A stretch of 64,000 nt of DNA from Trichosphaerium sp. ATCC 40318 (GCA_038496445.1 JALMLS010000440.1:255197-319196); one strand, 5' to 3'; shown: positions 12,655 through 57,964, counted from the stretch's first letter. A program made the numbers and translations. Notes: a model not told the origin generated them from the sequence alone.

Positions 12655-13287
12655 TTATGGTTTTTGTCGAAAATCCAAACCTGATAACTTGTCCCGTATA
12701 ATTTTATGAACACCCAAAAGTGATTTCATACCTTCATATGTAATACCTTCATAACAATGGCTGACATCAATAGTATGAACACCTAATAGTGACTTTATGC
12801 CTTCATCTGTAATACCCTGACACCACCTGAGATAAATACTATGAACACCTGAAAGTGACTTTATACCTTCATCTGTAATACCACCGCAACCACTGAGGTT
12901 GATTGAATGAACACCTGAAAGTGACTTTATGCCTTCATCTGTAATACCCTCACACCAACTAAGACATATTGTATGTACACCAGAAAGAGATTTTAGATCT
13001 TCATTTGTAATAACCTTACACTCACGGAGATCAATGGTATGAACTCCAGCAAATCTTGTTAATGTGCCTTCATAAATGGGTAAGATTCTGATTTTTGTAT
13101 GCCTTAGAGTGCTACTATGTTTTAATAGCACTTCTGCTTGTTCTACAGATGAAATTGTAACACTGTCGTATCCAACAATATCATGAATGATGGAAGCGAG
13201 ACAACGGCACGTTTGGCAAGCTTTAAATCGTGCTTTTGTTGTTTGTCGTAAAATATAGGCTAATATCTCTGTAGGTAACTCCAGCAT
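12655..13287 (-). CDS. Intronless F-box/LRR protein
   Basis: F-box-like MLELPTEILAYILRQ...ACQTCR; four to five near-identical 25-aa repeats SLSGVHSIxLxxCxGITDEGIK. Confidence 0.85.
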   Translation of the reverse strand: MLELPTEILAYILRQTTKARFKACQTCRCLASIIHDIVGYDSVTISSVEQAEVLLKHSSTLRHTKIRILPIYEGTLTRFAGVHTIDLRECKVITNEDLKSLSGVHTICLSWCEGITDEGIKSLSGVHSINLSGCGGITDEGIKSLSGVHSIYLRWCQGITDEGIKSLLGVHTIDVSHCYEGITYEGMKSLLGVHKIIRDKLSGLDFRQKP

Positions 13288-21618: not shown

Positions 21619-22542
21619 TTAATTCCAGACTCTGATAAACTTGATACCAGCTGCTTCAACATGCTCTTGTATAATATTTGAATTAAAAGTGGCTTCAATG
21701 ACTTTAAGAGATTGCATGTGTTTAAAAAAGTCAGTGTTAATACCAGTACAATGAACCAGCTTAAGGCGTTTAAGGTTACCCAAATTCTTAAACCCTGATC
21801 CTGTTACATTGTAACATTCATACAAGACAAGCCATGTTACATTAGTAAATGCCTTAATTCCTTCATCACTGACTAAGTGAGATCCATGTGAGTTTGGTTC
21901 TTTCAATACAATTGTAGAAGCATTACTAAGGTGGTGAAGATATTCATCTTTTGGGTTTCTTACAATGATGTTATGTACATCTTTAAGTGCTTTAACTCCC
22001 TCTGCAGTTATCCCGAACTTATCACCATTAAAGCTAATATAACGAACACCTGTAAGTGCTTTTAATGAGACATCTGTTAATGATGTATATTCCAAGCTGA
22101 TTGTGTGAATATCATTTTTTTGAACTAATGCAAGAATGCCTTTATCTGTAATCTTCGTGTCATCAAGTAGTATTGTATGTACTCCTGATAACTCTTTAAG
22201 GCATTCATCTGTTACTTTGGTATAAGAAAGCTTTATATTGTGAACACCATCAAGACAAGCCATATCATCAGGTGACACCTGCAAACCCCACACACTTCGA
22301 ATTTTTGTGTTTTTAAGCAATGGGCTGCCCTTTAAAACTTGACAATCTGCTGAGGACTGTAATTCGATGCTTACAAAGCCGAGATTATGTCGAATGATGT
22401 TGTTAAAGAGATGGGAGGTTGTGGTGGCGCTAATACGTTGCTTTTTGGGTAAATACCGTAAGATACAAGTTAACGTCTCTGCTGGTAGCGTGGTAATGCT
22501 AGCGACGCGCTGTGATGACGATTGTTGCTGTTTGTTTTCCAT
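21619..22542 (-). CDS. Intronless F-box/LRR protein
   Basis: ITTLPAETLTCILRYL F-box; repeats LSGVHTILLDDTKITDKGI. Confidence 0.85.
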   Translation of the reverse strand: MENKQQQSSSQRVASITTLPAETLTCILRYLPKKQRISATTTSHLFNNIIRHNLGFVSIELQSSADCQVLKGSPLLKNTKIRSVWGLQVSPDDMACLDGVHNIKLSYTKVTDECLKELSGVHTILLDDTKITDKGILALVQKNDIHTISLEYTSLTDVSLKALTGVRYISFNGDKFGITAEGVKALKDVHNIIVRNPKDEYLHHLSNASTIVLKEPNSHGSHLVSDEGIKAFTNVTWLVLYECYNVTGSGFKNLGNLKRLKLVHCTGINTDFFKHMQSLKVIEATFNSNIIQEHVEAAGIKFIRVWN

Positions 22543-31900: not shown

Positions 31901-34900
31901 AATAGCTACAATAGCATCTGTTCCTTCTACTAGTTCATCTGGTAGTACAATACTAGCCGTAGGTACTAAAGAAAATGAATTAAAACTCAAACAAGAAGTC
32001 GTTCTTACCTTTCTTAGCAACAACTTTGAGTTCTTTGTTGATAATATCTTCACCGTTGTACTTCGCAGTAATAGTTGTATCACCAACTTTATCAGGCTTG
32101 AAAGATATCTCTACTTTGCTTGGTTCGCCTTCAACAGGGTCAACAGTAACATCGCTACCATCAGATGTTTCAACGCTCAAGTTTTCTTTGTCAATCTCGA
32201 TCGCATCACCAGACTCCTTGTCTGTGACTTGCATCGTAATTTTAACATCTCCTCCTTCAGTCACTTCTTCAGGACAATCTTCAAAAGCTCCAACAGGGAC
32301 TAAAGGAGAAACTTGTTAACAACGAAGACTTGATTTAAGTGAAACTTTTTGAGGTACCCTGTTTCTTCTTTGATGCGATGTCGGTTGATAGAATTTCTTC
32401 GCCATCATAAGTAGCTTTGAGATTGTTGTCACCTGCTTCATCGATTGTTACAGTGATAGGTACTTCTCCAAGTGTGTCAGAGTCACCGACTTCGACATTT
32501 CCGTTATCAACAGTGACAGCGAGCTTGTCTTTGTCTACTTCCATTGGAGTGTTATCAACTGAATCTACAACCTTCAATGTCGCTTCAAAAGGTTCACCAG
32601 CAAGGATGTCTTCTGGTACGCCTTCACATGTTGCTGATGGAACTTTCTTATGCTTGAAGTCTATGTCTTTTGTACCGATGACGGTTGCCTCATAGAGCAC
32701 TGATAGTGTCTGGTTACCTTCTTCAGTGTATTTCAAAGGTATTTTGAACTCTGAAGGGTTATCGGTTGGAGTACATTCGACGTCTTCATCACCAAGAGTG
32801 GCTTTAATATCATCTGACTCTAATCCTGCAAATGGTTCTTTGGATTCTTCATCGAGCACTTTAACGACAGCTTCAGCATCAGTGCCTTCAACAACTGTAT
32901 CTGGTACTGTGAACTCGGCAACAGGAACTACATAAAACTGTCAGTAGCTGTTTTAAAGAGTTAAGTAGTTCTTACCTTTCTTTGCGACAACAGGAATCTC
33001 TTGAGACAACACATCAGCATCATTGTATTTTGCAGATATTGTTAGAGGCCCAACAGAGTCAGGAGTGAACGAGATTGATACTTCATTTGGATGGTCATCA
33101 ACAGATTCGACTGTGACTGGAACATCACCAGAAACAGTGACACTCAAATTATCTTTATCAATGTCCATTGGATCGCCTGACTCTTTATCTGTCATTTGAA
33201 GTGTTAGTTGTGATTCTGAACCAGCGATGATCTCATCAGGTGGATCATCTATCGATAGTGTTGGTACTAAAACGAAGTTAGTGGATCAAAGTATTGTTTG
33301 TTTATAGAATACCTTTCTTTACTTTAGCTTCGATATCATGAGAAAGTATATCTTCGCCATCATAAGTAGCTTTGAGACTATTATCACCTGCTTCATCGAT
33401 TGTCACTGTGATAGGTACTTCTCCAAGTGTGTCAGAGTCACCAACTTCAACATTTCCGTTATCAACAGTGACAGCAAGCTTGTCTTTGTCTACTTCCATT
33501 GGAGTGTTGTCAACTGAATCTACAACCTTCAATGTCGCTTCAAAAGGTTCACCAGCAAGAATGTCTTCAGGTACGCCTTCACATGTTGCAGAAGGAACTT
33601 TCTTGTGCTTGAAATCTACATCGTTTGTGCCGATGACGGTTGCTTCGTAGAGTACTGATAGTGTTTGGTTACCTTCTTCAGTGTATTTCAAAGGTATTTT
33701 GAACTCTGAAGGGTTATCTGTTGGAGTACATTCGACATCTTCATCACCAAGTGTGGCTTTAATATCATCTGACTCTAATCCTGGGAACGGCTCTTTTGAT
33801 TCTTCATCAAGCACTTTAACGATCGCTTCAGCATCTGCGCCTTCAACAACTGTATCAGGTACTGTAAACTCGGCGACAGGAACTACACAATAATATTAGT
33901 AAGGTTTCTCCAACTGTAGATGTTTACCTTTCTTTGCTACAACAGGTATGTCTTGAGATAGCACATCAGTATCGTTGTATTTTGCGGATATTGTGAGAGG
34001 TCCGACAGATTCAGGAGTGAATGAGATTGAGACTTCATTTGGATGATCGTCAACAGACTCAACTGTGACTGGAACATCACCAGAAACAGTGACATTCAAA
34101 CTGTCTTTATCAATATCCATTGGATCGCCTGACTCTTTATCTGTCATTTGCAAGGTTAACTGTGACTCAGAACCAGCGATGATCTCATCAGGTGGATCAT
34201 CAATCGATAGAGTAGGGACTGTGGTTTTAGTTAGTAAAGTTTTTTTTTTTAGGCTTTTACCTTTCTTTGCTTTTGCTTCTATATCATGGGACAGTATATC
34301 TTCGCCATCATAAGTAGCTTTGAGATTGTTATCACCTGCTTCATCGATTGTTACAGTGATAGGCACTTCTCCAAGTGTGTCAGAGTCACCAACTTCAACA
34401 TTTCCGTTATCAACAGTGACAGCGAGCTTGTCTTTGTCTACTTCCATTGGAGTGTTGTCAACGGAATCTACAACCTTCAATGTCGCTTCAAAAGGTTCAC
34501 CAGCAAGAATGTCTTCTGGTACGCCTTCACATGTTGCTGATGGAGCTTTCTTGTGTTTGAAGTCTACATCTTTGGTACCGATGACGGTTGCTTCGTAGAG
34601 TACTGATAGTGTTTGGTTACCTTCTTCAGTGTATTTCAAAGGTATTTTGAACTCTGAAGGGTTATCGGTTGGAGTACATTCGACATCTTCATCACCAAGT
34701 GTGGCTTTAATATCATCTGATTCCAATCCTTCAAATGGTTCTTTGGATTCTTCATCAAGTACTTTGACGATTGCTTCAGCATCAGTGCCTTCAACGACTG
34801 AATCAGGTACTGTAAATTCGGCAACAGGAACTAAAAATAATATTATGTTAAGTGTTTTAAGAATGACAATATGCGTTACCTTTTTTTGCGACAACAGGAA

Positions 34901-37900
34901 TCTCTTGAGATAATACATCAGCATCGTTGTATTTTGCAGATATTGTTAGAGGTCCAACAGATTCAGGAGTGAATGAGATTGATACTTCATTTGGATGTTC
35001 GTCAACAGACTCAACTGTGACTGGCGTATCACCAGAAACAGTGACACTCAAATTATCTTTATCGATGTCCATTGGATCGCCTGATTCTTTGTCTGTCATT
35101 TGGAGTGTCAGTTGAGACTCGGAACCAGCGATGATCTCATCTGGCATATCATCAATTGAAACAGTCGGCACTTAACAGCGTAAGTAAGTTTAACAACAGA
35201 TCATTTTATGGTTACCTTGCTTTGGCTTCGCTTGGAACTCTTTAGACATAATTTCCTCGCCATCATAAGTAGCTTTGAGATTATTGTCACCTGCTTCATC
35301 AACAGTAACAGTGAAAGGAACTTGTCCAAGCGTTTCAGAGTCACCGACTTCAACATTTCCTTTATCAACAGTGACAGCGAGCTTATCTTTCTCCACTTCC
35401 ATTGGAGACCCTGTCACTTTATCGATAACATCCATGCTCACGCTTACAGGTTCGCCAACAATGACATCTTCTGGTATCTCACATGTGGCGGAAGGCTCTG
35501 TTTTAACAGAAAAGTCAACTTTGGTAAACAAACCAAGATTCCGAGTACCTTTTTTGTGTTCAATAGATAAGTCAGCTTCGCCAATGACTTTATCATCATA
35601 TGATACAGATAACTTCTTATCACCTGGTTCATCGTTCTTGAGATCGATTTTGAACTCACCAGGAGTATCAGAAGGCTTGCAATCAAGATTTTCATCTCCA
35701 AGTGTTGCTTTAATTTTAGCAGGATCAATGTCATCCATCACCTCTTGTGTTTCTGCGTCTTTTATTGATACTGTAACAGAAGCGTCTTCGCCTTGTTTTA
35801 GGACATCAGGAAGCTTAATATCTGCAGTAGGAACTATACAAAGTAAGTCATCAACACAACTTTTTTATCTCTTTATCTAGCTTTTAATTGTGTACCTCTC
35901 TTTGGCTTAACTTCAACTGTATCGTTCAATATTTCTTCTCCGTCGTATGTAGCAACTATATTCTTACTTCCAGGATCATCAAAGGTTATTTTTGCTGCTA
36001 CTTTACTAGAAGAGTCACCATCTTCAAAATCGACATCGTTATCACCAACTTTCAGTTTTAGCTTGTCTTTGTCGATTTCCATATCGTCTCCGGATACTTC
36101 ATCAATGAGACGAAATCCAAGAGGTATCTCAGAACCTGCTTCGATGTCTTCAGGTTTATCATCAACCAAGAGTTTAGGCACTTGAACAGACAGTAAGAAA
36201 AACATCTTCAAAAAGCATGAACAGAGTTACCTTTTTTAGCGTCCACTGTGAATTCCTGAGAAGCAACTTCTTCATTATTTATAGATACCTTGAGTGTGGC
36301 TTTACATGGTTCTTCAAAAGATACTGAAATAGGCACTTTGCCTACTTCATCAGAGTCGCCAATATCTAGCTTCCCGTTTTCAAGAGTAACTTCAAAGTTA
36401 TCTTTATCAACCTCCATAGGATCTCCAGTGACAGAATCTGAAACGCTAATCGTTGCCTTATATTCTTCTCCAGTAACTATATCGTCTGGTATATCGAATC
36501 GTGCGACAGGTACTAGTTAAATTTATCAGCAACAAATCCACAAGAAAGTAGGTTTTTACCTTTTTTGTGATCAACAGAGAACTCTTTTGTGCCGATCTCT
36601 TTACCATCGTATGTGATTGAAAGTTTTTTATCGCCTGGATCATTAAAGTTGAGAGGTAAGGAGAACTCTCCAGGGTTATCAGAGGGTTGAACTTCAATAT
36701 CTTTTCCATCCAAAGTAACTTTTACTTTGGAAATATCAAAGTCTTCAATATCCTCGTTAGATTCCTCATCTTTAACTGTAAACTTCAACTCTGAATCATC
36801 ACCTTGTGTGAGAGTATCGGGTACAGTAACTTCTGCTTTAGGGACTAAAATACAAGATCAATAAACGCGAGAGCAAAAAACGGAGAAAAAGAACAAATTT
36901 CTTAGTTTCTTTGGTACCTTGCTTCTTCGCTACAGCGATATCTTCGTTTAGTATTTCATCGTCATCATATTTGACAACCAATTTCGTATCACCAGGTTCA
37001 GTTGGTTTGAAAGTGAGCACAACTTTTCCTGGTTCATCTGAAGGCTCAATTTGTAGGTCTTCAGCAGGAACGTTTACATTTAATTTATCAATATCAATAT
37101 CAAGAGGTTCTCCAGAGCCTTTGTCTTTTACTTGTACAACCATACGAACTGGTTCTCCAGCTAAAGGCTTCTCTGGCTTCTCTACAACATTACCAACAGG
37201 TTCTAGAAGTAATGAGTAAGAAGAGAATGCGCTAAACTTTTTTGTTCACCTTTTTTAGCTTCAACATCTAGCTCAGATTTGCCGATTACTTGGCCATCGT
37301 AAGACACTTCCAATGGAACCTTTCCTCCTTTATCCAAATTGAGAGGTATTTTAAACTCTCCTGGGACATCAGAAGGCTCACATTGGATATCTTTACCATC
37401 AAGAGTAACTTTAATCTTTGACGGATCAAAATCTTCCAAAGGTTCTGAAGTATTTGCGTCTTTGACATTGAATGTTACTGAACCATCTTGACCTTGAGTC
37501 AACGAATCTGGAACATCAAATGACGCTGTAGGCTCTAAAATACGAAAACGTATGAGAACGATAACTTCGTTAAAAATATGAAACACGTGATATTTTTTTT
37601 GTTTACCTGGCTCAGGTTGAACGTCTATTGTTTCTTTTGCTATTGGCTTTCCATCATAAGATATAGTCACTGTCTCAGCTCCTGGATTCTCTATTTCGAA
37701 AGGTATTTTAAATTCACCAGGTACATCAGTAGGTTCAATCTTAACTTCTCTATCTCCAATAGAAACTGTCAACTTTTCACTTTTTTCAAATGGTTTTCCA
37801 GTGTTAGGGTTTGTGAGGTTTACTTTTATCTCCTGTGGTGTACCAGTTATAAACTCTTTGGGTGGATCGCTTATTTTAGCGAGAGGTTCTGAAGGTAAAA

Positions 37901-50703: not shown

Positions 50704-52315
50704 TTTAATAAACATTTATTATTACAAAACAATCTACTACTTTTATATTATGTTAATGAAGCCTCTCAACATGTAAGGTGGTTATTTAACACAACTGAAC
50801 AGGTGAACTTTTATTGTTAATGATAGCAACTACTGGTAATGCCCTCATACGAATTAACGGTTTAAAATTATTATTATAAGTTGTATAACAGTGGTTTAGT
50901 ACCTGAAAAATGGCAAGCCGGCCTTATAAAGAAATCTTGTAACCTATCACCCAACACTGAGTCTACTGCTCTCATTGTAATGAAAACAAAATGGATTATA
51001 CAAACTAGTTGAATGATACAGAAAACACGTGTTTCGGTATCTCACAAGTGACGAGGATCAGCAGTGAAAACGACAGTACTCAGCACATTTTAGGTATAGA
51101 GTGAACCACAATTGAATCCGAACAACTTATCCGAAGTCAAATGTGGTAAACAAAAAAAAAACTACAAAGTATTTGCTATGTTGTCGGTTGTTGCTATTTT
51201 TGTAGCTTTGTTTATCGTTTACATATTTTTTATACGTCGTACACGTAAAAGGATAAAAGGTCCTCCGGGTGAGCCTATACTTGGTAACATCAGGGAGTTT
51301 ATAAGACAACCAACCGGTAATATACGCTACCAGCTACTGGAGAAGGTACTAGAAGCGTTAGATGTTGTTTTTGAATGACTTACGACAGTTAGTGGCGTAA
51401 ACAGTATGGAGATGTCTATGAAATCTCCCTACTCGGCAGACAGCTTGTAGTGGTGTCTGACGCAGATGACATACGTTACATACTTAACGATCGACCTGGA
51501 GATTTTATTGCTCCGCCTATGTCTCCAAACGTGCTACGGGTACGTAATATGACTATTTTAGTACTTTACAAGCGTATAAGCTAACCTGTGGGTGCTAGGA
51601 ACTTTCCACTAATGGGATGATGGCGACAGTTACAGGACCTCGTTGGAAGCGTTTAAGAAAAGCCGTTGCGCCATCATTTACAAAGGCAATACTCAGAAAG
51701 AACTTTAAACAGATATTTGACGTGTTTACTGAAATGATGGAAAAATGGCACGTGCTCGCCAAAACTGGAGAAGTTGTGTCTGATTTGTACAATCACACTT
51801 CTCAATCTACTCTTGAAGTTATTTCCAGGACTACCCTCGGTATGCGTCCTTCTTTACTAGGTAAGAAAGATTTCGGAAAATACAGCGGTTGGCAAGCTGA
51901 CATATTGATTAGATGAAAAACAAAACCTCAGGTTCCGTGAAGCCTTGGCTATTCTGTTTTCCACAATATTTAAGAGAGGTAACTCGCCTTGGCCGTACTG
52001 GAAGATTCCATACTGTAAACCCCAAGTACGCATATCAGGTGATCACATTCTGAAGCTAGTGTCACTAACAGACTACAAAAAGAAAGAAGCTTTTTTAGAA
52101 AACGAACTCAAAGAATTTGTAAATCCGTTCATTCAAAACGCTATTGATACCGCAAAAAAGAACGTACTGGAAGGCAAAGAACCATCTAACTTAGTAGAGG
52201 TAAAGCAGTGTTTTCTGTTTATTATTGTACTCCACTAATGACTTAAAAAGGCAATTGTTGATCACTCTGGCTGGACTGACGAAGAACTTTTTTCCAATTT
52301 AATCGGGTTGTATAT

Positions 52316-55300
52316 CTCTATGCGCTGAATAGCTAAAAGAGGATTTCCGATACTCCGAATAGTGTTAAACAACTTTAAACACACTGTAGAAACGCTACCT
52401 GCAAGTACAGCTCATAATGTTGAGAATAAAAAAAACGGTTTGTGGTTCACACGTGTTTCATATTTTACAAGGTCTAAGTGCTTCAAACATGAACTTCTTG
52501 TAGAGCGTAGGGTTTTTATGGCCTCTAAAGTGCAGTTGAACGAAGGTACGGAACCGAAAAACGCTAAATAATGAAAGATGTCTTCAATGGGTTTATACTC
52601 CTTCGGAATAGTACCACACTCATGTTTACGCGTAAAATAAGATACCAATCTACTTTAAGCTTCCCAATTAGCTCGTCTAATGTAAATTGTTGATAGATCC
52701 TAATGAATGGCCTCTCGTTAGCTGGCGTAATCATAGCTGTGCTTGGGATGCTGTATACACAGGTTTACATTCTGTTGGTGATAACGTACATTTTTTGAAG
52801 CTGCAAGTGGATTTACACGTGCTAGGTGTTTCCTACTCTTTCAGTGCTTTTGAGAGATCCAAGCACAGAAAATAAAGAATTATTCATTAAACAGTTTTTG
52901 GCTGATCTCTATGAACGTTTTCCGAAGGAGAAAAAGAAGATTGAAGTGGCATATATCAAACAACGTTCTGGCATATATTCAACACTATTCAATGTCGATG
53001 CTGTTCATGAGTTTGTGCAACAACAATGTCTTGCTTTTCATGCGACCTATGAGTATGATGTACAATGCAACTGTGAAGGTATTGTGCCCATATTTATAGC
53101 TATAACATTGCATAGAATACCAAACAAAACCTGTGTTTGTTTTTGCACCTAGAAGCGTCCAACACAATTTTGAAGAATGGGTAAACAAGAAAATTGGCAG
53201 AGCTTCAAACTGCAAAACATGTCGCTATGGTGGTTCCAAAGAAATCAAGGCATACAATATCTCAACATTACAGTGCTTACACAATTATAGGCTATTACTT
53301 TGCCGTTGTTACTTACAGTACTGCCAAAGAATGATTTCAATGACATTCCAGAGTTGTTTATGCATAACAAACAGTACTAACATAATTGTGGTTTCATTTA
53401 ACTTTACATAGTGAGTGGAAAGCACAGTACATAATTATGTGGCAGCCAAATCCAAAACATTTTACATGTTACGTCAGCACCAACAGCGGTTGGTGGTTTG
53501 TGGATAACATGAAAAACCCAACTATTGGTGTTAAATCAAACCCATGTTTGTTTTTTTTGACAAATTAATAGTTGACAACTGTAGGGACAAATACAAAAGT
53601 GCATGGTGATGGGTGGAGAGTTCAGCGTGTAATATACAAATGTGATAATCCATATAAAGTCACTTTGGATGTCAAACATAGTCACAACATTCACACCACC
53701 AAAAGAAGTACTATTCAAATAGACTTGCTTGATGAGCCCAACAGTTCTGATTCTATGTTTGTACCCACCAACAACAATAGCAATGAGCATGATGAGGCTT
53801 TTTCAGTTGAAAATAAAGAGACGGCTAAAGCTACAATATTTGTTCCTGGTCCAAAACACAAGAGCATTTCTATTGTTGTTGTACTTGGTAGACGAAGGGC
53901 CTTGTGGTTTGAAAAGGCTGTGTGTATTATGACATTTTTCAATAGCTAAGTTGTTCTAGGGCAATAGAAAGTGGATTGTACGGGTGAAGATGACAATTAG
54001 TAACAAAACTTGTGTACACGATATGTGGGAAATAGAAGCAAAAGAAATAACTGGCTTTAAGAGAGCATTTAAAGAATGGAAAGCCCAGCAGGACACTATT
54101 TCTAAAGTACGTGATAAAAAGCTATGTGTAACTACTTACATGAATTGGATTACTGGGCACAACAACGAAACACTTAAACAGCTTAACCAACAGCCACTCA
54201 AGCACATAAATGCCAAAGATATACTTGATATAGAGTCTAGTAATAACGCTGTCTGGGCGCACTCTTATCCTCCTTCCATACGTGATGCAGTAAAACAGTG
54301 GTTACACCCATTATTTCAAATGGTTAAACGGTGTTCAAATCAAGGTGGTAAATGTGGTTTTATTGCTTTAATAGTTTGTAGGTTATAGAACACTTCCAAA
54401 CGATCTTCGAGAACAGTACAATGCACTTAAAAAATACAATCTAATCAAGTATACACACAACATGCAAAACAAAACAGTAGAGTTCTATCCAGGTACATTA
54501 TAAGGTTCTGTCATTTTATATTAAGTAATGAAAGATGTGGTCTCAACTAGCTGGTACAAAAACAAGGTGTTAAAGACAAAAAGGAGGCTTAAAAAGGCTG
54601 AAGAAAATGGCATTACCACATTGGAGTCATTGCAAGCACATATTGATGTGAAGAAGTATGTTGCTTCTTGTAACAAAAAAAAACATCATAAATGGACATG
54701 TGCTGGTTCTTGGAATATGGAAGGCATTGAACATTACTTTGGTGTGTTGTTAACAATGAAGTTGTCTCCACAGTTTACTCTTAGCGATTTTTGGAGTACT
54801 GATACAAAATTTGGGAATATAGGCATGTTTATTTAATGTTGCGTAACAAAGTATTATTAACATACCATTAATAGCTATAAAAACAAGTTGTACAAAAGAG
54901 CAATGGCAAGAACTCACAAAACAAATTGACTACCAGCCTTTAGAGGTCCAACGGTATGTGAAATAATCTATGAGTGCTAAAGGATGTAGCTTACTGAATT
55001 CAACTATTAAAAAAAACTTTAATCCCGGAATATTGTCGTGTTTGGATGAAACTGTACTACCAGAGCAAGTACGATGTTGATTACAATGCATTTTGACTTT
55101 GTGTAGAAATATGGTTCACTTGTTTTTGTTCACGTAAACCAGTTAAAGAGGGCTTTTGGGTTTTTGAATTATGTTTTAAGGTACATGGTGATAACTTTAG
55201 CATATTAATATTAAGATAGAATGGTAAGCACGTTTGGCCCTGGATATTGGAAATGCGATTTGGAGAAAGTACTATTCCACCATCTCACATGGCACATTAT

Positions 55301-57006
55301 ATAGCATCACAAATACTCAAAAAAGACAACACAAAGCGTATAACTATAGCAACTGACTCGTACTACACTACACCAATCATTTCTAAGCTTTTAGATGATG
55401 ACAGATTTAAGTTTGTTGGCTTGATGAGTTCCAAAAAAGCACCAAATATGATAAACCATTTGCGACAAGTAAGTAACCATTTGGCGAAATTCCTTAAGCT
55501 TGTTAGATGCTTCCCAACAACGGTGTGGGAGCCCATTGTTGGGTTTATGATGCTGACACTATAAACAATGGTTCTGTTGTTTGTGCTGGTATGTTCAAAG
55601 ACATAAAAGCACATGTTGCGTACATATCAAACATTGGCAATCCAACTGTTTTTGTATCAAGCAAAAAACCAACCAAATCAGATAAAAAAGCTGTAAACAA
55701 GCCAGAACCAGTACACGCATATTCAGAACTGAAGAACTGCTGTGATATTTTCAACAGATTGTCTGTAATACTTTGTTTTATGCCATTGACTGTTTTTAGT
55801 GTGCTTAAGTACAAACGTATCCATTCCACAAAACACACACGTTGGACCACAGCTTTATTGGCAGCATACTTGTACATAGTTATTGTATGGCTACACTAAT
55901 GAGTTTAGTGATTTGTTTCTTGCTTCATCTTTTTGCTGGTATTCAATGCTGAATCCTACTTCAATAAGTTATCCCATGTACATGAACCAAGTTGCAGATC
56001 TGTTGTTGAAACTCACTTCCAAAAGACCTTACACTATACGCCAGCGAAAGCCATCATGCTCACAGTGTAGGTATGCATTTTAAACAACACATAAGCCTAT
56101 TGTTTTATCTAATTCTCTTTAAGAGAGTGGCATAAAAAACTATCAATTGATGCACACAAGCAAAGAAAGCCATCAAGGTCATCAAAACGATTAAGATGTA
56201 CAACCACAACTGTACAAGAACCACCAACCAAGCGACAGTGTGTGAAACATGCTTTATTACACCCTACACACCAGCCAATTAAGATGAAAACCAAATCAAA
56301 CAAACGAAGTCATGAACTTTTGTCGCTTTCACAATCAGATTACCATCAGCATTTACGCCAGCTAAAGTATTCAAATTGTTCTAGAAGAGCTTGCAAAAAT
56401 AGGAATAGGACACTGTAATATTCCTTCTCGTATGTATCTAACAACTGTAGGTTTTGCAGTGGATGCCCTATGTATCGGCAATGGGTTACAATTGATGGAA
56501 AAACAAAGCTTGTTACCATTCCACAGTTTTATTGTACAAAATGCTTTTACAAGTGCCACTAGATTGTATACATTGGTATAGATAATATCCCATACTAAAC
56601 ACTTGTATTTGGGGCTTCTGTAGTATAGGAGAAGCATTTTGTGTAACTGAGGAAGGCGGGTTACACCTAACTATTTGTTTTAGGTAGAATGCTGTTGTAT
56701 TTAACTTCTCTACTTGTTTTGTGAGCTGTACTGAGGTGTTGTCTAAATGTGTTATGTACTTTCATGGTTTGTATCAACGGTAAAATAGCCTATGTGTGAT
56801 TTGAGGTAACATTTGGCGAGATAACACAGCTTTTTGCTTTTTTTGCAAATGTAAAAAAAGGCTAACATCCATGCGCATTTGGATGCATATTTTTTGCATT
56901 TTCAGCACCGCCAAAAACAGCACGGCAGCACTATAAAAGAACAGCGGAGTTGTTTCCGAACGGTTTTACTTCATTTCAGTGAGCTGGGCTTATTCAGCGC
57001 ATAGAG
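52316..57006 (+). mobile_element. piggyBac-superfamily DNA transposon, 4,691 bp, perfect 16-bp TIRs, ATAT TSD
   Basis: TIR CTCTATGCGCTGAATA at 52316-52331 and its reverse complement at 56991-57006; ATAT at 52312-52315 and 57007-57010; removing the element restores ttg tat att gct (LYIA). Confidence 0.95.
52518..56562 (+). CDS. Intron-rich transposon ORF: USP-like cysteine protease, possible chromodomain, piggyBac DDD transposase, Cys-rich C-terminus
   Basis: EHYFGVLLTM..P...DFWS....GN; SCLDETV; RKPVKEGFWVFELC; IATDSYYT; KPEPVHAYSELKNCCDIFN; RW; terminal CSRRAC...FCSGC...YCTKCFYKCH*. First exon uncertain; 1-nt frameshift near 55131. Confidence 0.8.
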
Positions 57007-57964
57007 ATATTGCTGGTATTGAGACCACCTCTGTTAGTATGTTGGCAATTATTTACTTCTTATGCAAGTATCCTGAATATCAAGATGACATATCTTCAGA
57101 AGTTGATTCTGTTCTTTCAAAGGAAAATCCAGGCTACAACGACTTTTTTGATTTACAACATTCGTCTGGATTTGTTTATGAAACAATGCGTTATTTCGGT
57201 CCAGTACCATTCACTAGAGTGAGTGCTAAAAATTCAGTTGTTCTCAAATCAAAGCATGGAGGTACGAGTACTTGTTATGGTGGTAAATAAACACGTGCTT
57301 ACAGTTGTGATAGATTTTGAAATAGAGAAAGGAGGATATATTTTCACAAATTGGCAAGCTGGTGTTTTGATGAATCCGAAGTTCTATAAGGATCCAACGG
57401 CTTTTAATCCATCTAGATATAGTCAAGGAGGTATGGAATATTGTTTTCAAGGGTTTTCAGGCTTAAGATATCTTTAGAAAAAGTTCCACGTGTTGCTTTT
57501 GGTGGAGGTGCCAGAATTTGCCTTGGTTATAATTTAGCTGATATTGAAATGATCGTATTCACTTCTCTATTGTGCCATAATTTCAAGGTATCCTTTTCGT
57601 CTGAAGCACCTAAGCAAGAACCCAATGGATTACGGAGAGTTCCAGATTTCACAATAGTACTTGAAACCAGAAAACAATAAGAATTAGGAATAAAATTGTA
57701 AGAGGCACACCTCAATCTTAAGATGAAGTTGCCAAAGCGCTTTCTGGTGCTCATATGATTAATCTTACCTATACTTCAGTTACAGATGAAGGTATACCTA
57801 TAACGTGGCTAAGTAAGGTTGATACAGTAAAACAGAGCTCAATTGAACGCTATCAAAACAAGTTTGGACTGCAGCATAATTCCAGTAACTTTTTTCAAAA
57901 CTACATGGCTTAGCACTTAACTACTTGAAAAGCAAGTTGTTCAAAACGAACGTGTTTATTGAGG

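Follow-up and report, generated by a model that had tools for sequence, protein, structure and literature searches.

Structure of the element and its insertion site

The region under study lies within a 64,000-nt stretch of eukaryotic DNA from Trichosphaerium sp. ATCC 40318 (GCA_038496445.1 JALMLS010000440.1:255197-319196; GC content about 0.37), hereafter called the window, and all positions are counted from its first letter. At 52316-57006 on the plus strand, the window contains a nearly intact transposon of 4,691 bp that has split a host cytochrome P450 gene. It represents a piggyBac family that is divergent and rich in introns and whose protein has a long N-terminal Cys/His domain. This domain is predicted to be encoded in one gene with the transposase, and it may be a papain-like peptidase.

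The longest inverted repeat of the region is a perfect 20-mer (52312-52331 and 56991-57010), composed of 16-bp terminal inverted repeats (TIRs; CTCTATGCGCTGAATA) and the flanking palindromic 4-mer ATAT. The 5′ TIR (52316-52331, plus strand) starts with CTCTATG and is a perfect inverse match to the 3′ TIR (56991-57006, minus strand). The two copies of the target-site duplication (TSD), ATAT, are found at 52312-52315 and 57007-57010 and are identical. A preliminary description of this locus, made without database searches, had given the span 52518-56562. These two positions are the start and the end of the coding region, and the TIRs and the TSD extend the element itself to 52316-57006.

The split P450 gene spans 51540-57680 on the plus strand, with exons on either side of the element. 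Pfam matches to PF00067 were obtained at 51617-51913, 56979-57287 and 57441-57677, i.e. on both flanks, and cover the profile positions 88-175, 272-348 and 398-447, respectively. To reconstruct the empty site, the element and one copy of ATAT were removed. The two P450 half-exons then rejoin in frame (...LIGLYIAGIETTS...), and the rejoined exon reads ...EELFSNLIGLYIAGIETTSVSML..., which is the AG.ETT motif of the I-helix. When a duplication of 0 or 2 bp was assumed, the P450 frame was broken. Because the empty site is in frame only with 4 bp, the element is located in the coding exon for the I-helix, not in an intron, and has generated a 4-bp duplication of ATAT. The perfect TIRs, the perfect duplication and the otherwise open host gene argue that the insertion is recent. 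The boundaries of the element, its insertion site and its piggyBac identity are practically certain.

Excision that leaves a single ATAT would exactly restore the P450 frame. No second copy of the transposon was found elsewhere within the 64-kb window. Near the 5′ end, a subterminal direct repeat was observed (TCCGAATAGT at 52354-52363 and TCGGAATAGT at 52603-52612), which could be a candidate binding site for the transposase.

The piggyBac transposase

The piggyBac transposase core with its three catalytic aspartates (DDD) is located at 54526-56070 on the plus strand, the aspartate codons being 55045-55047 (D1), 55355-55357 (D2) and 55744-55746 (D3). It is followed by a C-terminal Cys-rich domain of the form C-x4-C ... 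CxxC ... CxxC-x3-CH (56377-56559, plus strand), which is a reading of the sequence and is split by the intron 56415-56450.

For comparison, piggyBac loci were collected by a degenerate scan with the motif DE..F.GR...Y.P.KP.K.G.K, which yielded 121 metagenomic or viral loci. A piggyBac profile was built from 42 long metagenomic open reading frames (ORFs), two of which were confirmed as PF13843 (1e-68 and 4e-78). The spliced transposase matched this profile with 54.7 bits (E 4e-19). The alignment spans KP.K.G, the second aspartate (IATDSYY) and the third aspartate (CCDIFN), and ends near 56242. Inspection by eye showed the Cys-rich tail, which lies beyond the profile-aligned stretch, and also the first aspartate (LSCLDETV). 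With Pfam, PF13843 was matched weakly on one single exon (E 0.0056). The profile match, the DDD residues and the Cys-rich tail confirm the piggyBac-like transposase that had been proposed for this locus.

Other searches did not retrieve relatives: the pieces of the transposase had no match among PDB sequences, a transposase ORF had none in a word-indexed search of 5.8 billion proteins, and the pieces of the transposon had none when scanned against metagenome and viral contigs. The nearest of the 121 fetched piggyBac loci showed only 22-24% identity, so the element belongs to a very divergent piggyBac lineage.

Upstream of the transposase core, a middle exon of 129 aa (53960-54347, plus strand) has an open frame. 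Its single-sequence AlphaFold2 model is poor, with a predicted local distance difference test score (pLDDT) of 43.6, and the comparison with Pfam gave only weak sub-threshold matches.

Gene model and splicing

Open segments were joined via GT-AG introns, by hand and with dynamic programming; a naive longest-ORF splice model was dropped as unreliable. The result is a predicted single gene of 19 exons and 18 introns (52518-56562, plus strand) with the start codon ATG at 52518, the stop codon TAG at 56560-56562, and a spliced product of about 1,050 aa, close to the roughly 1000 aa estimated before. Exons 1-7 are 52518-545, 52697-785, 52826-53078, 53116-249, 53291-373, 53412-527 and 53585-880; exons 8-13 are 53960-54347, 54382-492, 54526-826, 54888-953, 54990-55068 and 55107-180; and exons 14-19 are 55220-468, 55507-764, 55810-871, 55909-56070, 56124-414 and 56451-562. 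All 19 predicted exons are open. From the composition, about 0.072 stop codons per codon are expected; for open exons 84-129 codons long, this gives individual p values of 2e-3 to 7e-5. Nine bases at the start codon (ATGGCCTCT, 52518-52526) recur exactly in exon 2 (52707-52715), 189 nt downstream, which may be due to chance.

The introns are small: 13 of the 18 have 33-45 nt, four have 53-79 nt, and one has 151 nt. The donors are GTAC (eight introns), GTAA (four), GTAT (three), GTGT, GTTT and GCAT (one each), and TAG is the acceptor in 13 of the 18 introns. The P450 intron 51540-51598 of the host reads GTACGT...GCTAG and shares the GTAC...TAG signature, showing that the element follows the intron style of its host. 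A length mode of 36-40 nt and the consensus GTA(C)...(C/A/G)TAG were observed in the element (52546-56450) and in the host P450 gene (51540-51598), which suggests that tiny spliceosomal introns are a trait of the host lineage.

Two positions required particular attention. The protease-like part contains a frame break for which no GT-AG solution was found. A putative GC-AG intron of 41 nt (53250-53290, plus strand; GCATAC...TTATAG) would remove it. Once it is excised, ...GGSKEIK continues as AITLPLLL... in phase 0, and the frame from 52518 to 53880 is open for 333 codons; this intron has the sole non-GT donor among the 18 introns. The second position is a run of five T (55123-55127) in the transposase. 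There, the intron 55069-55106 (GTAC...TGTAG) is followed by KYGSLVF, and the adjoining SRKPVKEGFW is one base out of frame, leaving a 1-nt frame shift at 55123-55129 (plus strand) in this assembly. No canonical splice that retains KP.K.G in frame was found at this run, and the sole frame-keeping alternative, a 67-nt intron (55076-55142), removes this conserved motif. The persisting shift counts against the explanation proposed below; a mutation and a homopolymer error are both compatible with it.

These results modify the earlier view of short introns that keep one frame apart from one 1-nt slip. The GT-AG introns do link the upstream pieces to the DDD core and the Cys-rich tail, and the exons are open far beyond chance. 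The slip is gone from the protease-like part when the GC-AG intron is accepted, and the shift at the T5 run is a separate one.

The N-terminal Cys/His domain

The protease-like N-terminal domain comprises about 255 aa (52697-53643, plus strand). Reading of the sequence revealed a Cys box SWRNHSCAWDAVY (52720-52758), two zinc-ribbon-like motifs, i.e. CxC (CNC, 53066-53074) and CxxC (CKTC, 53211-53222), a His box KHFTCYV (53455-53475), the motif GWWFVDN (53488-53508) and a terminal strand WRVQRVIYKC (53614-53643), all on the plus strand. The Cys box, CNC, CKTC, the His box and WRVQRVIY had already been listed in the preliminary description, and each is found where it had been placed. Candidate catalytic residues are Cys 52738-52740, His 53458-53460 and Asp/Asn 53503-53508 (plus strand). 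In the spliced protein, the landmarks have the positions 24 (Cys), 119 (CxC), 156 (CxxC), 170 (LP), 207 (His) and 222 (Asp/Asn).

Their order is that of the ubiquitin-specific proteases (USPs), and the spacing is plausible. The Cys stands before the aromatic-rich start of a helix, then come CxC...CxxC, LP.LL.V, Y.I...H[F]..Y and WW.VDN, and the last landmark is a terminal aromatic strand. Additional support was obtained for the exon with the His box (38 aa). Its nearest language-model neighbours are UCH clusters, with a best score of 0.92, and 76 of the 100 nearest Atlas clusters are in sets with UCH recorded, i.e. 48 in a set with 12% UCH members and 28 in a set with 98%. MAFFT was also used to fit each of the six exons separately to a USP alignment; it set the His-box exon on the corresponding box of the USPs, with Y, H, W and D/N in register.

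For the tests of USP membership, 119 giant-virus genes found by a Cys-box motif scan (five confirmed as PF00443) and 120 database USPs were assembled. Of these, 86 giant-virus and 120 database sequences went into two USP profiles, with 138 sequences in all after redundancy filtering. The results weigh against a membership of the domain in the USP family. Pfam searches of six exon pieces for UCH, UCH_1, C98 and OTU at E values up to 10 gave no match, and neither did a PDB sequence search with the N-terminal pieces or a comparison of exon 3 with 1.84 billion representative proteins. The spliced domain scored -1.5 to 0.2 bits against the USP profiles (local HMMER), and 13-36% of the shuffled sequences scored at least as high. 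The comparison with USP by hhalign gave a probability of 0.3, and chaining the best-conserved USP blocks in order gave p values of 0.16 to 0.6. MAFFT placed the other five exons non-colinearly on the USP alignment. The language-model neighbours of the exon with the Cys box are unrelated proteins and not UCH-like, and those of exon 3 are MULE-transposase-like.

Exon 3 is the sole contiguous piece of the domain with a confident model. Modelled alone from its single sequence, it folds as beta-alpha-beta-beta-alpha-beta (pLDDT 77.7), and the matches of this model are generic ferredoxin-like folds. An all-helical thumb is expected for a USP, and the predicted alpha/beta fold thus counts weakly against USP; the evidence is weak because an isolated fragment may fold differently.

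A full-model Viterbi alignment with the two USP profiles gave an identical colinear alignment from the CxxC motif to the end, with z values of 3-4.5 relative to shuffled sequences. This signal was rejected, because it is matched elsewhere in the protein: against the USP sub-model, windows of 105 aa from the middle exon and from the N-terminus of the transposase score as high as the domain or higher. The signal is therefore compositional and not specific. The profile method itself is sound, since the piggyBac control worked.

The assignment to USP/C19 in the preliminary description is thus not borne out by any significant profile match. The landmark order is present, and the likeness is confined to the level of motifs. 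The capture of a canonical USP from a host gene was also considered and rejected, as the domain is unlike any canonical USP. Judged from its motifs, membership in the USP family specifically is a tentative assignment, somewhat on the doubtful side, while for a papain-like peptidase of any family we regard the chances as even.

The most serious alternative is that the domain is a non-peptidase, i.e. a lineage-specific zinc-binding module for DNA or protein, and that it resembles USPs by chance, in no more than a few residues. It would account for the non-significant USP profile tests, the equal scores of other windows on the USP palm model, the generic matches of the ferredoxin-like alpha/beta unit formed by exon 3 alone, and the transposase fragments among the Atlas neighbours of this exon. 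Long unconserved N-termini are, moreover, common in piggyBac transposases; one example, the metagenomic locus L129:2453-5680, encodes a piggyBac ORF of 1,076 aa with an N-terminal extension of 590 aa that has no significant Pfam domain and no sequence relation to the N-terminus of the present element. However, six USP-type landmarks in the correct order and with plausible spacing would have to be coincidental, the exon with the His box was judged UCH-like by two independent methods, and protease cargo recurs among DNA transposons. We consider a non-peptidase a real possibility, albeit one that is rather less probable than its opposite.

Downstream of the domain, an acidic, Ser/Asn-rich linker (53713-53754, plus strand) contains a motif that resembles a SUMO-interaction motif (IQIDLLDEPNSSDS), with a hydrophobic core that is followed by an acidic/Ser run; it is recognisable by eye only.

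One gene or two products

The protease-like and the transposase halves are bridged by a predicted intron of 79 nt (53881-53959, plus strand; GTACTT...TTCTAG), which is in phase 0 on both sides. The exon that encodes the last protease-like strand is open for 98 codons, 80 of which lie past that strand, and via this GTAC...CTAG intron it joins the 129-codon middle exon in phase.

Alternatively, two products could be formed. If the 79-nt intron is retained, the frame stops 22 codons inside it, at 53947-53949, resulting in a separate Cys/His protein of about 355 aa, and the transposase would be made from the next in-frame ATG at 53990-53992, by an internal start or by alternative splicing. However, stop and ATG are separated by just 41 nt, which leaves no space for a terminator and a promoter, so that a separate transcription unit is unlikely. 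In addition, the 79-nt intron shares the GTAC...CTAG signature and the phase compatibility with the other 17 introns, and the exon is open for 80 codons past the last protease-like strand. We therefore rate two products as unlikely.

A single fused gene is quite probable on the basis of the predicted splicing. A single transcript is very likely and a fused protein is likely, and a protease-only isoform that would be formed by retention of the 79-nt intron is possible. The one-gene fusion of the preliminary description is retained in this graded form: the in-phase intron, the long open exon and the 41-nt gap argue for it, and it depends on splice sites that are predicted.

Other possible families of the domain

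A further possibility is a non-USP peptidase of clan CA, either of the OTU type or of some other, that contains a zinc-finger insertion. For an OTU profile, 24 viral sequences were used; four were checked, and two of them are PF02338. The domain scored 3.1 bits against this profile, above the scores of the USP profiles, and only 1.3% of the shuffled sequences scored as high (p = 0.013). An ordered-block chain gave p values of 0.01-0.04, in which RNHSCAWDAV takes the place of the OTU Cys box and NPKHFTCYVS that of the His box, and YGGSKEIKAITLPLLL aligns with the motif WGG..E of OTUs (WGG..E on YGGSKE, HY on HF). Helitrons and Ginger1 elements are known carriers of the OTU type. However, the p values are marginal once several families have been tried, and the OTU model of Pfam did not match. 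The distance from Cys to His is 190 aa, compared to about 125 aa in OTUs, and the His is followed by a further stretch of about 45 structured residues, a feature of USPs and papain that OTUs lack. The Atlas neighbours are UCH and not OTU. An OTU or other non-USP peptidase is thus quite improbable.

The weakest candidate is a His-Me finger (HNH) nuclease module in the zinc-ribbon region (CxC ... QHN ... CxxC), in which the two Cys pairs around His-Asn resemble Cys4 HNH motifs and for which KolobokP is a precedent that combines a DDD transposase with a His-Me finger (PMC9587614); it is highly improbable, as a profile of 114 viral sequences gave -0.9 bits with 42% of the shuffled sequences scoring as high (p = 0.42), and no Pfam HNH match was obtained.

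Proposed function and significance

Taken together, the locus is best explained by a recently inserted, nearly intact and probably autonomous DNA transposon of the piggyBac superfamily that splits the I-helix exon of a P450 gene. It would encode one product of about 1,050 aa with, from the N-terminus, the Cys...zinc-ribbon...His...Asp/Asn domain, the acidic linker with the SUMO-interaction-like motif, a region of 130 aa, the DDD core and the Cys-rich tail. The DDD core would carry out cut-and-paste transposition. The N-terminal domain would most likely be a papain-like (clan CA) thiol peptidase, present in one polypeptide with the transposase, and could free the transposase, nearby chromatin or repair factors of ubiquitin or a ubiquitin-like modifier. 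This role is proposed because other DNA transposons carry Ulp1 and OTU domains, to which the N-terminal domain would be analogous. For the explanation as a whole, a piggyBac transposon with an N-terminal papain-like peptidase fused to the transposase, we see the balance as level. The more far-reaching version, a multi-copy mobile piggyBac lineage in which a true papain-fold isopeptidase for ubiquitin or SUMO, with a USP topology beyond the reach of profiles, is fused to the transposase, is conceivable, and we would sooner expect it to be wrong than right.

If the domain is a working protease for ubiquitin or ubiquitin-like modifiers, piggyBac would join MULE, Ginger, Helitron and the IS5-like Trichomonas element as carriers of deconjugating enzymes. 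The idea that transposons manipulate ubiquitin/SUMO signalling as they transpose or during repair would thereby be strengthened. If it is translated as one polypeptide with the transposase, this would also be the first fusion of its kind known from piggyBac elements and, besides Ulp1 and OTU, a third independent way for DNA transposons to recruit deconjugating enzymes. Should the domain turn out not to be a protease, what is left is ordinary: a divergent piggyBac family, rich in introns, that carries a long N-terminal extension. The perfect ends, the clean 4-bp non-TTAA duplication and the insertion in a coding exon point to recent activity, and the copy offers a defined empty site for excision assays.

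Two further observations concern the remainder of the window. An ORF of 341 aa with a filamin repeat (33896-34921, minus strand) has no relative at E <= 0.001 in the index of 5.8 billion proteins. As this ORF and the pieces of the transposon are without relatives in protein searches, the genome seems to be from a poorly sampled lineage. ORFs with F-box and leucine-rich repeats are present at 299-1000, 12655-13284 and 21619-22539, which suggests that this family is expanded in the genome.

Comparison with known systems

The element shares the DDD core, the C-terminal Cys-rich domain, the 4-bp target duplication and short TIRs with piggyBac elements (PF13843, DDE_Tnp_1_7). Canonical piggyBac termini begin with CCY, whereas the present ones begin with CTC. 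The target is ATAT instead of the canonical TTAA, as seen in one insertion, which cannot define a preference. Both features are atypical and count against the explanation above. In a survey of piggyBac elements, TIR lengths of 12-19 bp were described, so that 16 bp is within the range, and ATAT is among the rare non-TTAA target sites (PMC5381638). Most piggyBac-like elements are intronless, in contrast to the 18 introns found here, and the about 470 aa of additional N-terminal protein are also unlike other piggyBac-like elements; across the 157 piggyBac elements of the survey, no protease is mentioned (PMC5381638).

For the USPs (peptidase C19, PF00443), the likeness consists in the landmark order, i.e. 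Cys box, two Cys pairs, LP..L, Y.L..H[YF], W..[FV]D[DN] and terminal aromatic strand. In contrast, the Asn is located 3 and not 5 residues ahead of the Cys, the GxxH.G segment before the catalytic His is absent, and the thumb region is predicted to be alpha/beta.

That Ulp1 and OTU proteases are cargo of other DNA transposons, as had been stated in the preliminary description, is established: Ulp1 is found in MULEs and Ginger, and OTU in Helitrons and Ginger1 (PMC2836005). These transposons likewise combine a thiol-peptidase-like domain of the ubiquitin- or ubiquitin-like-deconjugating type with a transposase, and the same role in transposition or repair has been proposed. However, their transposases belong to different superfamilies, and the OTU match of the present domain is marginal. 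Ulp1 is excluded because the catalytic order is Cys and then His.

A literature search for piggyBac linked with a USP domain found no paper, in agreement with the earlier statement that no such fusion was known. In a wider sense this statement has to be qualified, because the Trichomonas vaginalis protein XP_001314237.1 combines Peptidase C19 with transposase_11 of the IS4/IS5 type (PMC2836005); it is the sole C19-transposase precedent found in the literature search. It is described as joining a USP-family peptidase to an IS4-related DDE transposase, and in this it resembles the architecture proposed here. There, however, a conserved-domain model detects the C19 domain, which is not the case in the present element, and the transposase is IS5-like and not piggyBac.

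Piggybac-derived genes with introns are also known, i.e. PGBD5, ciliate TPB2 and PiggyMac (PMC5381638), and the present gene resembles them in its many introns. In contrast to these domesticated host genes, which have no TIRs, the present element has perfect TIRs and a TSD and lies in a disrupted gene, showing that it is a mobile copy.

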